This document shows positions 7,244-60,426 of a stretch of DNA of 64,000 nucleotides, in pieces. The position numbers and the translations under genes are program-made. The DNA is taken from sequence record NC_028829.1. One strand, 5' to 3'. Below the pieces are notes generated by a model. That model had not been told where the DNA came from and did not search any database. It was given only the letters and a program-made list of their open reading frames with translations. Every line of letters begins with the position of its first letter. The first letter of the stretch is position 1.

Positions 7244-8170
7244 TTACTCGTCTAGCTCTAGGTCAGCTAGTAGTGCGTCTAGCTCGTCATCGACAGAATC
7301 AGTCACTGCCTCTTGTGAAGCAGGAGTGTCGTCAGTGTCGATAGTTGCGCTTGGTTTAGCAACTGTACGAGGTGCATTTGCTTGAGCAGGAGCACCAGTG
7401 TTCAGTTGAGCTTCAAGATTTTGAGCAGCCGTAGATGCTTTAGACTGAGCAGCGCCAGTCACTTGAAGAAAACGCTTCTGAAGGTCAGCTTCAGATTTAA
7501 ACGCAGACGGTGCAATGATTGCGTTTAGGTCGTGCATTTGGTCCCAGACTTCTTTCAGTTTAGCTTCGTCACCGCCGTATAGCTCAGTGCTTGGGCCGAA
7601 TTTAGAGTCGTCGTAGTTAGGGAAACCAGATACTTTCTTAGCTTTCAAGCTGAAGTTAGCACCATCGAATACACAAGTCACGTCCATGCCCGGTACACCT
7701 AGATCTTCATCTGCTTGAGCAGCTTGAGTGATCTTGTCAAGAATTTTCTTACCGAAACGGTATTTGAAAACTTTGCCTTCATTTTCTGGTGCAGCTTCAT
7801 CTTTGATTACAACGATGTTAGCCCAGTAAGAAAGAGTACGCTTGCGTTTACGTGCAATGTTTTGGTTATCTTCGTTTTCAGTTTTCCAAAGCTCGCCGTT
7901 AGCTTGGCAGCATGGACATGGAAGATCGATAGTCGAAGGACAGTTTTCGATGTACCAGTTACCGTTTTCTTTGAAACCGTGTGTGAAGATTTTTACAAAT
8001 GGTAGGTCGTCTTCGCCTTTAGCAGGCAGGAAGCGAATCACCGCAGAACCATTACCAAGCTTGTCAGTAGAAAGTTTCCACTCGTCAGCATTGTCGAATG
8101 ACTTTTTGCTTGACATTTGCTCTAGTTTTTCTTGAAGTTTTGCTGGAGATTTGCGTTTGAACATAGACAT
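7244..8170 (-). CDS. 32: Single-stranded DNA-binding protein gp32
   Basis: MFKRKS, AVIRFLP, HGFKENG.WYIENCPST...CPCC, KVFKYRFGKKI, acidic C-terminal tail. Confidence 0.97.
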   Translation of the reverse strand: MSMFKRKSPAKLQEKLEQMSSKKSFDNADEWKLSTDKLGNGSAVIRFLPAKGEDDLPFVKIFTHGFKENGNWYIENCPSTIDLPCPCCQANGELWKTENEDNQNIARKRKRTLSYWANIVVIKDEAAPENEGKVFKYRFGKKILDKITQAAQADEDLGVPGMDVTCVFDGANFSLKAKKVSGFPNYDDSKFGPSTELYGGDEAKLKEVWDQMHDLNAIIAPSAFKSEADLQKRFLQVTGAAQSKASTAAQNLEAQLNTGAPAQANAPRTVAKPSATIDTDDTPASQEAVTDSVDDELDALLADLELDE

Positions 8171-8171
8171 A

Positions 8172-8233
8172 TTGTATTTTACCTTGTATTTTATAGTATG
8201 ATATAGTATCGTATAGTGTGTTATTGTATTTTA
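8172..8233 (-). promoter_or_regulatory. Probable gp32 autogenous translational operator (unstructured A-rich repeats)
   Basis: TAAAATACAA x3 and three ACTATA units at 10-nt spacing in the gene 32 leader. Confidence 0.55.
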
Positions 8234-16885: not shown

Positions 16886-16906
16886 ATACGCGAAGCGAAA
16901 AACGGT

Positions 16907-16972
16907 AAGAGGCGGAAAAATTCCGTCTCATCTTAGTAGTATTAGTGGTTTTAGTGATATTAGAAGTATTAG
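16907..16972 (+). repeat. Copy 1 of a 66-bp element; exact reverse complement of 42952-43017. Contains a hairpin and 9-bp TTAG tandem units
   Basis: Base-by-base comparison of the two loci. Confidence 0.95.
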
Positions 16973-16982
16973 AGGGATTAGT

Positions 16983-17012
16983 GTTTAAGCAACCAATGAT
17001 GAAATGTATACT
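16983..17012 (+). promoter_or_regulatory. Promoter for uvsY: GTTTAA-N18-TATACT
   Basis: Same geometry as the promoter at the second repeat copy. Confidence 0.6.
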
Positions 17013-17030: not shown

Positions 17031-17444
17031 ATGAAGCTACAAGATTTAAAAATTGAATATCACGAAGACGTGAAAATTGACACAACTGCTTTAGAAACAG
17101 CAGCTATTCGAATTCCCGTTCTTCATGCGAAGTGGCTTGCATACCGAGCCGATGCAAGACAACTACTTATCAAAGCTGAAATGAAAATGGAAGCTGTGAG
17201 AAAAGACCGCTGGCTCTTTTATAGCGGCAAACATGACGATGAAGTTTGTGATTTCATCGTAGAAAAGAGTGAAATGAAATATGCTCTTGCGGGTGATGAA
17301 TATCTTCAACGTGCAATTGCTACTTTTCAACACATGAAAGATGTGTTATCATTCATCGAAGAAGCTTTGAAAGGCATTAGTCAAATGGGCTTCACAATCA
17401 AACACATTATTGACAACAGAAAAATTGAGAGTGGTATAGTATGA
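17031..17444 (+). CDS. uvsY: Recombination mediator UvsY
   Basis: 137 aa; EDVKIDTTALE, LHAKWL, KGISQMGFTIKHII. Confidence 0.93.
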   Translation: MKLQDLKIEYHEDVKIDTTALETAAIRIPVLHAKWLAYRADARQLLIKAEMKMEAVRKDRWLFYSGKHDDEVCDFIVEKSEMKYALAGDEYLQRAIATFQHMKDVLSFIEEALKGISQMGFTIKHIIDNRKIESGIV

Positions 17445-41129: not shown

Positions 41130-42812
41130 TTATACTTTTAGTACAAATGATTCATGGTCGATAGTAACGTTAGCCGCTGTGCTAGCCAATACTCGAATCT
41201 CACTCAAGTCATCTAGATTCGCAACGTTAGTGATTGTAACTGGAGTAACTTGGTTTGCACGAAGCGTACGTGTTTTCTCGATTGATGAGCTTGTGCCGTT
41301 ATCATGGTCGAAATCAATTCGAATCGTGATTGTAGTGTTTATCGGTGAAACAACAACCCAGTGAATAGACATCGTTTTGCTCAGTGATAGACCGTTACGT
41401 GTCAATACACCCCCTGCATACGTGTAGCCACTTACATCTGTATCAACGTTGAATAAACTAAACACATCTGTCGGAGTAGTTGTAAGATCAACAGTGCTCG
41501 GGGTATCAGAAGTCAACAATGCATGATCAAGCTGTGATTCGAGTTCTAGAACACGCGCACGTAAGGTGCCCACTTCACTATCACTCTGACCAACTACAGC
41601 CAATAGACCGTCAACGTCTGCTTGAGCAGAATCAACCAAACCACGGTTTTCTTGAATTGTGTACCATGCAGTAAATTCAACGGGGTTTGTACGCTCACCT
41701 AGACTAGACTCAAGCTGTGACACTCTGTAAGACACTGTGCCAGTTTCTGCGTCAGTAGCCCCTAAACGACCCCACAAGCTATTAATATCGTCGTTAAACG
41801 TCGATAGACGAGCTTTCATGCTACCAGAGTACACGTCACCTACTGCGTATGATCCGATATCAGTTGACACTTCAATATATAAGTTAGTAACGGCGCCAAT
41901 CTGTGACTGATTATCTGCAATTGTAACTTCATTCGCGCTAACGCGATCAAGTAGACCTGTAGTCGGTGTCTCAACTTCCTGTTGTAATAATGCAATATCT
42001 GATGCATTGTCTGAAATAGAACTTTCAGCATCATCAAGACGAAGATACACGGGACGAGCAGGGTCGGCATCTGCCGTTTCACCTAGTTCATCACGAATCT
42101 GATCAACAGAACCAACTTGCGAGTTTTGCTCTAGTTCGTATAAACGACCGTTGATTGAAAGCGGGATTGCGTTCTCGCCGATTTCAGCGTTGATCGTAGC
42201 TGTTTTGTTGTACAGATCTTCAATCTGATATTTCATACCAGTTGGGTTTGTACTAGGCGATGGGTTGCCATTGACATCGTAGTTACGATCATTACCAATA
42301 CGACGCTTGATGAAATATAGGTCTTTACGAACTGTATCGTTGTTTTCAACTTCGTTTGGAATATCTAGGCTGTTACGAACACCAATATCTGCTTCAACAT
42401 CTTCGATGCCTTTATGCAGACCTGTTGCAAGTACGTCAACACTACTCGGTACACCGATGTCATCAATGACGTTAGTCATTTGACCTTCAAGTACATCAAT
42501 ATCAAACTCGTTTTGTGACACACGAGAACCCAAGTTAGCGTCACCGCCACCTGTCAGTTCGTTAACAGTATCAACAAGTTCTTCAATTGCGCTTTGCTGT
42601 GCTTTTGTGTTGTAATGAGAGTTTAGAACGTTTTCTTGAATCTGTACTCCTGCGCGGTTTAATACACCGTCTGAAGTCGTGTCACCAGAAGCACCGTTGA
42701 TGCTTTCACCGTTCTTAGCCCAATTGATTCGAGTCTGATCGGGACGTTGAGAAGGATCTGGTTGACCATTTACATATCTAAGCTCTTCAATGATAGGCTT
42801 TTGAATTGTCAT
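41130..42812 (-). CDS. wac: Fibritin (whisker/collar), start MTIQKP
   Basis: YVNGQP...RINWAKNGE, GVLNRA; long segmented coiled coil. Confidence 0.9.
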   Translation of the reverse strand: MTIQKPIIEELRYVNGQPDPSQRPDQTRINWAKNGESINGASGDTTSDGVLNRAGVQIQENVLNSHYNTKAQQSAIEELVDTVNELTGGGDANLGSRVSQNEFDIDVLEGQMTNVIDDIGVPSSVDVLATGLHKGIEDVEADIGVRNSLDIPNEVENNDTVRKDLYFIKRRIGNDRNYDVNGNPSPSTNPTGMKYQIEDLYNKTATINAEIGENAIPLSINGRLYELEQNSQVGSVDQIRDELGETADADPARPVYLRLDDAESSISDNASDIALLQQEVETPTTGLLDRVSANEVTIADNQSQIGAVTNLYIEVSTDIGSYAVGDVYSGSMKARLSTFNDDINSLWGRLGATDAETGTVSYRVSQLESSLGERTNPVEFTAWYTIQENRGLVDSAQADVDGLLAVVGQSDSEVGTLRARVLELESQLDHALLTSDTPSTVDLTTTPTDVFSLFNVDTDVSGYTYAGGVLTRNGLSLSKTMSIHWVVVSPINTTITIRIDFDHDNGTSSSIEKTRTLRANQVTPVTITNVANLDDLSEIRVLASTAANVTIDHESFVLKV

Positions 42813-42852
42813 TTTTTGTTCCCTTGTATTGTAAATGAACATAGCTTACTAC

Positions 42853-42860
42853 TATTTATA
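42853..42860 (-). promoter_or_regulatory. Late promoter TATAAATA (wac)
   Basis: Exact consensus. Confidence 0.85.
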
Positions 42861-42900
42861 GCAATACAAAGAAACAGAGAGGGAATGTCTTTATGTGTTA

Positions 42901-42930
42901 ATAATAGCAAGCATATTCATGGTATTAAAC
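42901..42930 (-). promoter_or_regulatory. Promoter GTTTAA-N18-TATTAT at the end of repeat copy 2
   Basis: Same geometry as 16983-17012. Confidence 0.55.
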
Positions 42931-42951
42931 ACGTATTTAATACTAATCATA

Positions 42952-43017
42952 CTAATACTTCTAATATCACTAAAACCACTAATACTACTAAGATGAGACG
43001 GAATTTTTCCGCCTCTT
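42952..43017 (-). repeat. Copy 2 of the 66-bp element (inverted relative to 16907-16972)
   Basis: Base-by-base comparison. Confidence 0.95.
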
Positions 43018-43041
43018 GCCATTTCTTCGCTGCGCTAATAC

Positions 43042-43070
43042 AAAAAAAGGGTGAGAAATCAATCTCACCC
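43042..43070 (-). terminator. Terminator after the second gp12-like gene
   Basis: GGGTGAGA-TTGATT-TCTCACCC-T7. Confidence 0.9.
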
Positions 43071-43110: not shown

Positions 43111-44538
43111 TTATGCAGTTCTTTCCCACATGTAAACAGTATAGTATGGCTGTACGTTATTATGTGGTTGACCACCACCTTCTGGTGATGAGTAATACAA
43201 GTAGTTGTCGTTATCAGTGCGACCTGAACCTGGGTTGCTTCTACCATATTCGTATGCAACTCCAAACCCTAGTCCGTTGCCACCGTAAGTCCAACGATCA
43301 CCCCAACCCGCGTGTTTGTGAGTTGGCATTGTTTCTTCAGTTAAGATAACTTCGTATTCACCACCTGTTTGTCTTACGTTGAATGTTCTACCACCATGTG
43401 TACCTTCAGATACAAGCACGCGACCTTCTGCAATTCTAGACCATGTTCCGCCGAATAGCGTAGCTGGTGATGTAGATTCAAGTGACATGTAAATAGCACC
43501 GACAGGGTACATATTCAACATAGCTGATGATTCAATCAGACCATTTGTCATTAACTGAGTACCACTTACAGATTGAACATCGTCAATTTTCAATGTACCA
43601 GTTACTGTCCCGCCTGAAACCCCAATCTTTTCATTATTCAACTTATAACCCATTGCAGCACTTAGTGCTTGAGTCGCGTCGTTTGTTGTTAGATTGTTTG
43701 CAAGTTTCGCAACACCGACACGTGAGCTAGTCGCAGTGAATAAATCTAATGTACCGACTGTGACTGCATGGTCATTAGATGTACGCGCATTTGCAACTGT
43801 TGAGTTCGGTAGATAGAAACCTGCCTTTCTCGTAGTTGTCGCTGTGCGTTCATTGAATCGATACGGTGAAATTGCTAGATTGTTTTCTGATGCTGATGTG
43901 CTGTTTACTTCAGTTGCATTTGCTAATCGAATCAACCCTTTCGTCGTTTCTGTAGCATCTGATGCGGTAGTATTCGCCCACACGTCAAGCATTTCCTTAA
44001 CTCGCTGTGGGGTCATAGCCACACTATTAGACAATGTGCCTGTTGTCGTTGCTTGTGCATATGTCGCTAGCCGTACAGCACCCGGCGAAGATTCAGTTGC
44101 ATAGAAACGAGTATTCAACGCGTAGTTCAATGTTTTAAGCGTGAATGCATGTTTCTGTGCTTCTTCTACTGCGGCTGTCGGGTCAATGTTATCAATCGTG
44201 CTGTTTGTAATCAGCTTCACAAAACCGTATTGAAGTTCTGTTGCAGTCGCGTGATTTTCCATCCAATAATTTAATGCAGATGGTGTCACTGCGCTTGTGT
44301 TATTAAGCTCATCTGCGACTGCTGCATTATCACTTAACAATGTAATACCCGCGACAGATGTTGATGCTATAGGGTAATCGGGTAATGGTTGAAGTGCATG
44401 AGCTTGTACAAGCTCAAGACACGTTTGGAGATCGTTATTACCCCCAGTAAGACCATCAAAGGAAGTACCTTCGACTTCAACTGTAACCGTACCCGCATCG
44501 TCAATCACGTGATTGAAAATTTGAGTTCCTTTACTCAT
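43111..44538 (-). CDS. 12: Short tail fibre gp12-like protein B (475 aa)
   Basis: gp12-type N-terminal repeats (ATETTKGLIRLA); YPVGAIY collar; HKH motif. Confidence 0.8.
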   Translation of the reverse strand: MSKGTQIFNHVIDDAGTVTVEVEGTSFDGLTGGNNDLQTCLELVQAHALQPLPDYPIASTSVAGITLLSDNAAVADELNNTSAVTPSALNYWMENHATATELQYGFVKLITNSTIDNIDPTAAVEEAQKHAFTLKTLNYALNTRFYATESSPGAVRLATYAQATTTGTLSNSVAMTPQRVKEMLDVWANTTASDATETTKGLIRLANATEVNSTSASENNLAISPYRFNERTATTTRKAGFYLPNSTVANARTSNDHAVTVGTLDLFTATSSRVGVAKLANNLTTNDATQALSAAMGYKLNNEKIGVSGGTVTGTLKIDDVQSVSGTQLMTNGLIESSAMLNMYPVGAIYMSLESTSPATLFGGTWSRIAEGRVLVSEGTHGGRTFNVRQTGGEYEVILTEETMPTHKHAGWGDRWTYGGNGLGFGVAYEYGRSNPGSGRTDNDNYLYYSSPEGGGQPHNNVQPYYTVYMWERTA

Positions 44539-59208: not shown

Positions 59209-60426
59209 TTACCCTAGGCTCACTGTTGAACCGTCTAATGCCGCAGCCCCTGCGAGACTAAGCGTTGCGCCACCACCGTCATCACTAATTGATGACGCCG
59301 AACGTGTATAAGACGAACTAACGCTTTCTGACATCGAGCCACCGACTGTTATTGTGTAATTACCGCTGATATTCTGCGTGTAATCGCCCGTGACGTTACT
59401 TTGAACATTCCCGCCCACAGTTTGATTAACATTCCCGTCAACGTTCTGTGTGACGTTCTGATGCACTGTCTGACTAACATCTTTATCAACTGTTTGAGTA
59501 ACATTCATTTCAACATGCTGTTCAACATTACCCTTAACATGCTGCTTCAAATCACCATCAACTTGCTGCGTGACATTTTGCTGGCAATAGAACGTCGCGT
59601 CACCGACAACGGTTATATTCAAGTTCCCTTTGATAAAGACATTCTGATCTTTTTGAACAATCTCAAAATCATCACCAACAATCTTTGTAACTTTACTGCC
59701 GTCAGGGTGAATTTCTTCAAATGTACCTGTTCGATGATACGTATGTAAACGCTCTGCACCCACAGTGTCATCAACCTCTCTGATGTGCCCAGATTCAGAC
59801 TCGTGTACATGATTGAACGGGTACTGCGCTGCGTACGGCGTCTCTTTCTCGTTATAAACGGGACCGTTTTGATTATATCCCGCAATCGGAATGTCTTTCT
59901 CTTCGGCTGCGCGTTTACTAGCGATTATTTCATGTGGTCTATACACATAAGGCGCATCGCCACTATCAAAATCGCTCTGAGATTGATTTTCATCATACAC
60001 ATCGGGATCTACATCGTTTCGAGCTAAACGGTTTGTATCGGGCTCATTAAGTTTATCAGCTAACGGGTATTTTTCGTTTGGGTCATTAAACCCCTTACTG
60101 CCGTTAGCTAATTCTTCAGGTATACCAGGCAAAACACCCATCGCAATTGCATCTTGATGCAACTTATCTCTGAAAAAGCCGAATACCCATGTACCTTCAA
60201 CTACCCCTATTGGTGTATTACCAATCCCGTTCATTGCAGCGTTATCAAGCGACTGCATAGGGTGAACCCAAAGAAGTTCTTCAGTTCGAATACCTTGATT
60301 TGAACTTTTCTTCTCGGGGTGAAACCCAATCATTCTGACTTTAATTCTACCGAGTTTGAGTGGGTCGTTTGTTCTATCTTCAACAACACCAGTCCACCAA
60401 TCAAACCCATCTAATCCCATAAACAT
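59209..60426 (-). CDS. 5: Central spike gp5 (OB fold plus beta-helix, no lysozyme domain)
   Basis: WWTGVVEDR.DPLKLGR.KVR, YPFNHVHESESGH, VxGxxxxx octapeptide repeats. Confidence 0.95.
   Translation of the reverse strand: MFMGLDGFDWWTGVVEDRTNDPLKLGRIKVRMIGFHPEKKSSNQGIRTEELLWVHPMQSLDNAAMNGIGNTPIGVVEGTWVFGFFRDKLHQDAIAMGVLPGIPEELANGSKGFNDPNEKYPLADKLNEPDTNRLARNDVDPDVYDENQSQSDFDSGDAPYVYRPHEIIASKRAAEEKDIPIAGYNQNGPVYNEKETPYAAQYPFNHVHESESGHIREVDDTVGAERLHTYHRTGTFEEIHPDGSKVTKIVGDDFEIVQKDQNVFIKGNLNITVVGDATFYCQQNVTQQVDGDLKQHVKGNVEQHVEMNVTQTVDKDVSQTVHQNVTQNVDGNVNQTVGGNVQSNVTGDYTQNISGNYTITVGGSMSESVSSSYTRSASSISDDGGGATLSLAGAAALDGSTVSLG

Follow-up and report, generated by a model that had tools for sequence, protein, structure and literature searches.

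KVP40-type vibriophages carry a fixed, cis-acting DNA element, of which the copy ahead of the fibritin gene wac is one of six. In this element a short GC hairpin precedes an array of five or six 9-bp TTAGnnnnn iterons set end to end, and the usual place of the element is just past a terminator and 0-25 bp ahead of an early-type promoter. Its function we infer from sequence, and on that footing the module is a good but unproven candidate for phage replication origins or for a special promoter control site. The wac copy was analysed in a stretch of 64,000 nucleotides (record NC_028829.1), which as a whole is called the window. A 4-kb query around this copy matched Vibrio phage ValKK3 at 100%; the window is DNA of that phage, a Schizotequatrovirus and KVP40-like relative of T4, and positions in the ValKK3 record equal window position + 124000.

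The wac copy lies on the minus strand between gp12-2, the second gp12 paralogue (43111-44538, minus, stop at 43111), and the late gene wac downstream (41130-42812, minus, ATG at 42812), both of them within the late virion block. Along the minus strand, the intrinsic terminator of gp12-2 (43042-43070; an 8-bp GC-rich stem at 43070-43049, then a T7 run) is followed by the sequence box GCGCAGCGAAG (43025-43035) and by the module hairpin, a palindrome GAGGCGGAA-AAA-TTCCGTCTC (42995-43015) whose fold has a stem of 9 bp, one of them G.T, and AAA as its loop. The trinucleotide ATC (42994-42992) separates the hairpin from an array of six 9-bp TTAGnnnnn units (42938-42991), which is iteron-like and nearly C-free on the minus strand. 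Beyond the array lies a predicted early-type sigma70 promoter (42901-42930), with GTTTAA as -35 (42930-42925), 18 nt of spacer, TATTAT as -10 (42906-42901) and a start predicted near 42894. The terminator stem (43070-43049) is 113 bp upstream of the -35, and the module stands in between. The earlier note had set out this order of terminator, hairpin, six units and GTTTAA-N18-TATTAT, and every part of it is present, the units exactly as written there; the late promoter that it assigned to wac about 40 nt further on is likewise found, as TATAAATA (42860-42853, minus), 40 nt past the -10. Its description of the early promoter as sigma70-type holds for the hexamers and the N18 spacing and needs correction in one respect: because a conserved TGn (42909-42907) precedes the -10 (TGcTATTAT, 42909-42901), the promoter is of the extended -10 kind. 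The 54-nt array had 0 matches in 100 shuffles and so is not a product of chance, and TRF reports a period of 9 at both the wac and the uvsY copies.

Other repeated sequences were observed in the same window. The junction of the two gp12 paralogues (44483-44534) has an overlapping 32-nt imperfect palindrome with CACGTG at its centre. Directly 5' of gene 32, which encodes the ssDNA-binding protein (7244-8170, minus strand), there is a tandem repeat of period 10/20 (TATAGTATGA-like; 8192-8229) that may be the counterpart of the autoregulatory leader of T4 gene 32. Tandem repeats of 24 nt (59465-59569) within a gp5-like baseplate hub/lysozyme gene are consistent with 8-residue beta-helix repeats.

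The module had been described as present in two copies; BLAST and nhmmer searches of the whole ValKK3 genome find exactly six, with E-values of 1e-19 to 1e-22, the next match having E > 4. All six are intergenic and point the same way as their flanking genes. They lie between gp126 and gp125 (g125 site), between a SprT-like gene and a glutaredoxin gene (nrdC site), between a tail-fibre gp35-like gene and uvsY, between gp12-2 and wac, between gp3 and the dNMP kinase gene (gene 1 site), and between gp386 and gp385 (g385 site), the upstream gene being named first in each case. The uvsY copy, copy 1 of the earlier note, occupies 16890-17012 on the plus strand, with GCGAAGC at 16890-16896, the hairpin at 16909-16929 and the array at 16933-16986; its promoter has GTTTAA as -35 (16983-16988) and TATACT as -10 (17007-17012), and the ATG of uvsY is at 17031. 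An intrinsic terminator precedes the module at the wac, uvsY, nrdC and gene 1 sites, whereas the g385 and g125 sites are without one upstream. A GTTTA-type -35/-10 pair follows 0-25 bp past the module at five of the six sites, at distances between array and -35 of 0, 0, 7, about 17 and 22 bp, and the distance at gene 1 differs between orthologues as well (17, 18 and 14 bp). The array of the g385 copy runs directly up to the start codon, without a promoter downstream of the module, which is therefore more than a promoter cassette. Around the 248-kb circular map the copies are separated by gaps of 45.2, 42.8, 26.0, 26.0, 53.0 and 55.2 kb; they are over-dispersed (probability of a minimum gap at least as large, 0.007; of a standard deviation at most as large, 0.005), with a p of about 0.006 overall for a spacing test that was picked after seeing the data.

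Every copy has five or six contiguous 9-bp units, and a half-site search found the hairpin motif in the six modules and nowhere else. The box upstream of the hairpin occurs at four to five of the six sites and is absent from the nrdC site; in place of the GCGCAGCGAAG seen at wac, most other copies carry (A)GAGCGAAGCG, which includes the mini-hairpin motif GCGAAGC (window 16890-16896; L002:3040-3058 and others). As DNA, this heptamer folds into a mini-hairpin of unusual stability, and it has been noticed at origins of phages; since it occurs 49 times in the genome, the match is weak evidence alone.

The same six sites, with the same flanks, carry the six copies in KVP40, VH7D and nt-1, the last of which belongs to another genus (Mylasvirus) than ValKK3, and orthologous copies are also present in D480, K566 and one metagenomic contig. 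Orthologous modules share about 85-99% identity; for the 201-nt wac region of ValKK3 and KVP40 the value is 89.7%, while the mostly coding 4 kb around it reaches about 78%. An alignment of 28 copies shows no variation in the loop, the 3' arm, CATC, any TTAG, most of units 1-3 or the first 30 nt, and conservation falls off toward the 3' end. At the g385 site, nt-1 (L144:1273-1400) and ValKK3 (L005:45855-45964) share the module and the upstream gene and differ in the downstream ORF; it is the sole one of the six sites where the module marks replacement of a downstream gene. At the uvsY site of K566 the stem is shortened and units 1-2 are gone while the downstream promoter is kept, and comparison of the sequences thus shows that the module can decay while the promoter stays. 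A metagenome scan found the module on three contigs. Two of them (L140:4562-4671 and L141:3601-3710, metagenome Ga0207798) have it in a further, seventh setting, where it directly adjoins the ATG of an ORF starting with MSFLVETT, and no promoter lies between array and start codon; in L140 the hairpin is broken (GGCTCAA / TTCCGC).

These patterns point to constraint on nucleic acid rather than protein, since the third position of the would-be TTA codon is invariant in all 28 copies. A coding reading (L-V-V frame; 43-aa ORF at 42891-43022) was rejected on the same invariant third-position A and on start codons that are unconserved, and a compensatory change in the hairpin would alter the peptide. 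Nothing is annotated under the module in the GenBank records of ValKK3 and KVP40. A 'hypothetical protein' is annotated across it in several other sequences (L139:3012-3185, PG216, VH1_2019, QD01, CZ01 and, in K566, L270:552-704); as neither frame nor start codon is conserved between copies, these ORFs are probably spurious.

The hairpin itself is maintained: 88% of cells in the alignment are paired, compared with 35-54% when the partners are slid, and a double compensatory change affects two pairs (CGG/CCG to CCC/GGG). This bears on an improbable alternative, namely that the module acts in RNA, its hairpin and regularly spaced UAG binding an oligomeric protein of the TRAP, HutP or RegA kind or directing processing, and thereby controlling stability or translation of the downstream gene in read-through or polycistronic transcripts. 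The compensatory changes preserve the stem, the G.U pair is tolerated on the sense strand only, and orientation always matches transcription; moreover, in the g385 copy and in those of L140 and L141 the array that abuts the start codon contains the Shine-Dalgarno (SD) sequence, and there is a precedent in RegA of RB69, which selects RNAs with UAA triplets (PMC3014915). However, at four sites a strong terminator lies directly upstream and a promoter downstream, so that most transcripts would lack the module. The compensatory change may also be a single event spread by conversion, and an Rfam search of the module gave no family match, returning only noise at E up to 10.

Further searches and candidate functions were also considered. 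A scan of IMG/VR with a specific pattern returned KVP40 and VH7D only, and with the degenerate pattern (TTAG-N5)x5 it was non-specific, returning coding repeats of giant viruses. The only match in a scan of bacterial genomes was an unrelated Flavobacteriaceae element with two TTAG in phase; many Flavobacteriaceae genomes (L150-L229; for example L150:6440-6520) have a conserved stretch that ends in TCATCTTAGTAGTATTAGTGCG just before a terminator. An internal promoter, with TAG(T/A)AT of units 1-2 as -10 and the palindrome centred at -30, is weakened by K566, whose uvsY site has lost units 1-2 and yet keeps the downstream promoter. No DnaA box lies near the module, which removes a DnaA box/DnaA-trio reading, and the position past terminators and ahead of promoters does not suit a lambda nut site (boxA/boxB). 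For an antisense Rho-loading site the antisense strand is suitably G-free but its YC dinucleotides are irregular. The resemblance of TAGTATTAG to the nonanucleotide of CRESS viruses was treated as chance.

The relations among copies bear on two suggestions of the earlier note, that recent conversion or strong selection had made the wac and uvsY copies alike and that recombination between them could flip the intervening segment. The two copies form an inverted repeat of 89 nt (92%; 16900-16988 on the plus strand for uvsY), within which 66 nt are identical (16907-16972 vs 43017-42952). Orthologous copies are mostly more similar than paralogous ones, with exceptions in the paralogue identities of ValKK3 wac-uvsY (0.96), ValKK3 gene1-g125 (0.99) and KVP40 g385-g125 (0.95). 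Units 3-4 of the wac copy are uvsY-type in ValKK3 and of a different type in VH7D and KVP40; the 66-bp identity is therefore attributed to recent uvsY-to-wac conversion in the ValKK3 lineage, one of the two causes that the note had proposed. No inverted order was seen among the 30 listed relatives that match the 4-kb gp12-wac query colinearly along 80% or more of its length, nor at any of the six sites in KVP40, VH7D or nt-1, and no breakpoint falls at the module in those 30 records or at the six sites in KVP40, VH7D and nt-1; the inverted copies are real and the isomers hypothetical. Rare isomers are nevertheless plausible, since T4-type recombination gets by with homologous patches of < 50 bp (PMC2839356), less than the 66 bp shared here, and since a crossover within the module would fall between terminator and promoter and leave the transcription units intact. 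That the module is nothing else than a recombination substrate or selfish repeat, shuffled in the manner of PeSL cassettes and without function of its own, its copies kept alike by gene conversion and inverted pairs sometimes flipping segments, seems to us the least probable of the readings. The episodic conversion just described, the short homology requirement (PMC2839356) and the different downstream gene at the g385 site of nt-1 would fit it; but the six positions are fixed in two genera with both flanks conserved, no rearrangement ends at a module, orthologues are mostly closer than paralogues, and conversion alone does not explain why none of the 28 copies departs from TTAG or differs in its first 30 nt.

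The promoter that follows the wac copy is conserved in a telling way. In six lineages the -35 GTTTA[A/G/T], the TGn, the -10 TA[T/A][T/A]AT and a spacing of 17-18 nt are kept while the spacer sequence is largely replaced, and since the hexamers, TGn and spacing persist as the spacer diverges, the promoter is under selection, in the pattern that a working promoter leaves behind. Unlike the promoter spacer, a box C(A/G)TAAAGACA just past the -10 (window 42885-42896, minus) is kept in all six lineages; it may be the start region or a separate signal. AsiA does not inhibit TGn/-10 promoters, and this clade, KVP40 included, encodes AsiA without a recognisable MotA (PMC2988021); the wac-site promoter may therefore, judging from its sequence, stay active beyond the earliest phase.

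Its transcript would nonetheless make no fibritin. In the predicted early transcript the wac leader folds into a stem-loop (42818-42876, minus) with a 15-bp stem (dG -19.3 kcal/mol, z -2.75) whose 5' arm is at 42876-42862 and whose 3' arm (42832-42818) covers the SD AAGGGAA (42825-42819). The late promoter TATAAATA lies in the loop, and late wac transcripts therefore lack the 5' arm. According to this fold, the ribosome-binding site is buried in the leader hairpin of early transcripts, from which wac would thus not be translated. No strong terminator follows downstream until about 38.2 kb; by analogy with known silenced late genes the arrangement implies that early transcription enters wac without being meant to yield fibritin. 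The claim that this promoter has no obvious early gene to drive agrees well with a leader whose stem sequesters the ribosome-binding site and whose loop holds the late promoter. The stem-loop is invariant across the six lineages, so no covariation is available. The design is that of T4 gene e and I-TevI, in which the ribosome-binding site is sequestered in early transcripts and the late promoter lies inside the structure (PMC3014915), the 5' arm being upstream of TATAAATA and the 3' arm over the SD; here it concerns wac and is known by folding and conservation alone. The wac leader is thus a further example of translational silencing by a late promoter in a hairpin. We know of no report of such a gene e-type silencing leader for wac.

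What the module does for such promoters can be read in two main ways. It might be a purely transcriptional upstream cassette, a specialised form of PeSL in which the hairpin and iterons act as an activating, insulating or UP-like element and boost or time a few prereplicative promoters (uvsY, gene 1, nrdC and others), possibly as the binding site of a postulated MotA-like partner of the clade's AsiA. We hold this to be a somewhat doubtful reading, albeit nearly as likely as that of an origin. In T4, both uvsY and gene 1 are under middle promoters. Of the six copies, five stand 0-25 bp upstream of a sigma70-type promoter and four past a terminator, which is the PeSL layout (PMC4122927); every copy is co-oriented with genes, units 5-6 occupy about -44 to -60, the zone of action of UP elements, and KVP40 has the AsiA without recognisable MotA that such a partner would serve (PMC2988021). 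On the other hand, array-to--35 distances that vary between sites and between gene 1 orthologues leave no fixed helical phasing, the g385 site has no promoter, and about 15-20 similar GTTTA-type promoters elsewhere in the ValKK3 genome are without the module. Six sites are also too few for a general middle class, and their even spacing is not expected of a promoter element.

An origin is the reading that we tentatively prefer. Replication would start where iterons that bind a factor, or melt readily, are combined with transcription from the promoter beside them: the 9-bp array would melt or bind an initiator specific to the clade, and the promoter next to it, early or immune to AsiA, would give the activating or priming transcription. 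The six copies would then be dispersed early origins of the phage and would parallel oriE, oriF (uvsY) and oriG (whose transcript, within a late gene, is non-coding) of T4. Within this reading the primer or R-loop role that the earlier note suggested for the wac-site transcript is an attractive hypothesis. That the modules are T4-type transcription-coupled origins is, by this analogy, possible at rather less than an even chance; that early replication in the KVP40/nt-1 clade starts from the six modules, which would make them the first T4-type origin set with one shared motif, is more doubtful. In favour of an origin stand the six co-oriented copies fixed at the same sites in four phages, their even spacing, and the joint presence of iterons, a GC hairpin and an adjacent promoter. 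Each array marks the lowest 50-bp duplex stability within +-1 kb and ranks at the genome's 99.6th percentile or higher, and four of the six are among the 20 least stable loci; however, other AT-rich intergenic regions are equally unstable, and the g385 copy and the two metagenomic copies abut a start codon without a promoter. Among neighbouring ORFs considered as initiator candidates, gp125, gp126, gp385, gp386 and ORF291 lack any Pfam domain and fall into PHROGs without an assigned function. In the literature searched, no replication or transcription data for KVP40-type phages were found.

The original KVP40 genome paper is said to have reported no early or middle transcription features. Hinton's review left open what the partner of KVP40 AsiA is (PMC2988021). 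The element bears on this matter and on origins beyond T4, and because it is compact, present in six copies, conserved across genera and evenly spaced, both questions can be tested with six defined targets, for which the non-pathogenic nt-1/Vibrio natriegens system is available.

Among known systems, the PeSL cassettes are the closest in layout. PeSL and PmSL cassettes made up of a terminator stem (A3-4G3-loop-C3T3-4) and a promoter are reported for nt-1 and KVP40 (PMC4122927), in a text that mentions neither the hairpin nor the 9-bp repeats. The likeness (Arbiol 2010, PMC2839356; Comeau 2014, PMC4122927) extends to a terminator stem-loop, an AT-rich stretch and a sigma70-like early promoter, to multiple copies co-oriented with genes, and to copies that recombine or convert mutually. 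The terminator is found upstream at the wac, uvsY, nrdC and gene 1 sites, and the promoter at the wac site as the predicted GTTTAA-N18-TGcTATTAT of six lineages. The SD and start codon at the 3' end of PeSLs are present at the uvsY, nrdC and gene 1 sites but not at wac, where an 80-nt structured leader with a late promoter intervenes. Unlike PeSLs, the module inserts about 90 bp with its own hairpin and strict 9-bp TTAG periodicity between terminator and promoter, has only six copies, which lie at conserved core-gene boundaries and not in hyperplastic ORFan regions, and is without associated indels or rearrangements, only the downstream gene at g385 having been replaced. Neither the motif strings nor a description of the element was found in the phage literature searched. 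We place the element with the composite cassettes, regulatory or origin, known from T4-type phages, as a variant not described in that literature.

To our knowledge, origins of this phage type have been mapped in T4 itself only. T4 has 5-7 origins without a common motif, most early DNA synthesis starting in late-gene regions, and at its oriE iterons of unproven role stand with an early promoter (PMC3016281). The copy number of six fits that range. Evenly spaced direct repeats, at least three of which mark iteron-type origins (T4 oriE, plasmid, lambda), are present in all module copies, and as at oriE they lie beside an early-mode promoter in a late-gene region at wac. However, oriE, in the late baseplate region, has 12-nt iterons, whereas the module has contiguous 9-bp units of unrelated sequence, six copies per genome and no RepEA/RepEB-like neighbour that could be found. 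The promoters of the R-loop origins oriF and oriG are MotA-dependent middle promoters with an unwinding element downstream; those of the module are early-type, one of them TGn/-10, the wac-site promoter has no MotA box at -30, and the least stable DNA lies upstream. Two likenesses favour an origin by analogy: one copy stands at the uvsY promoter, the position of oriF, and at wac a conserved promoter in a late region yields a transcript that nevertheless hides its ribosome-binding site and so would have no translatable product, as at oriG (gene 34).
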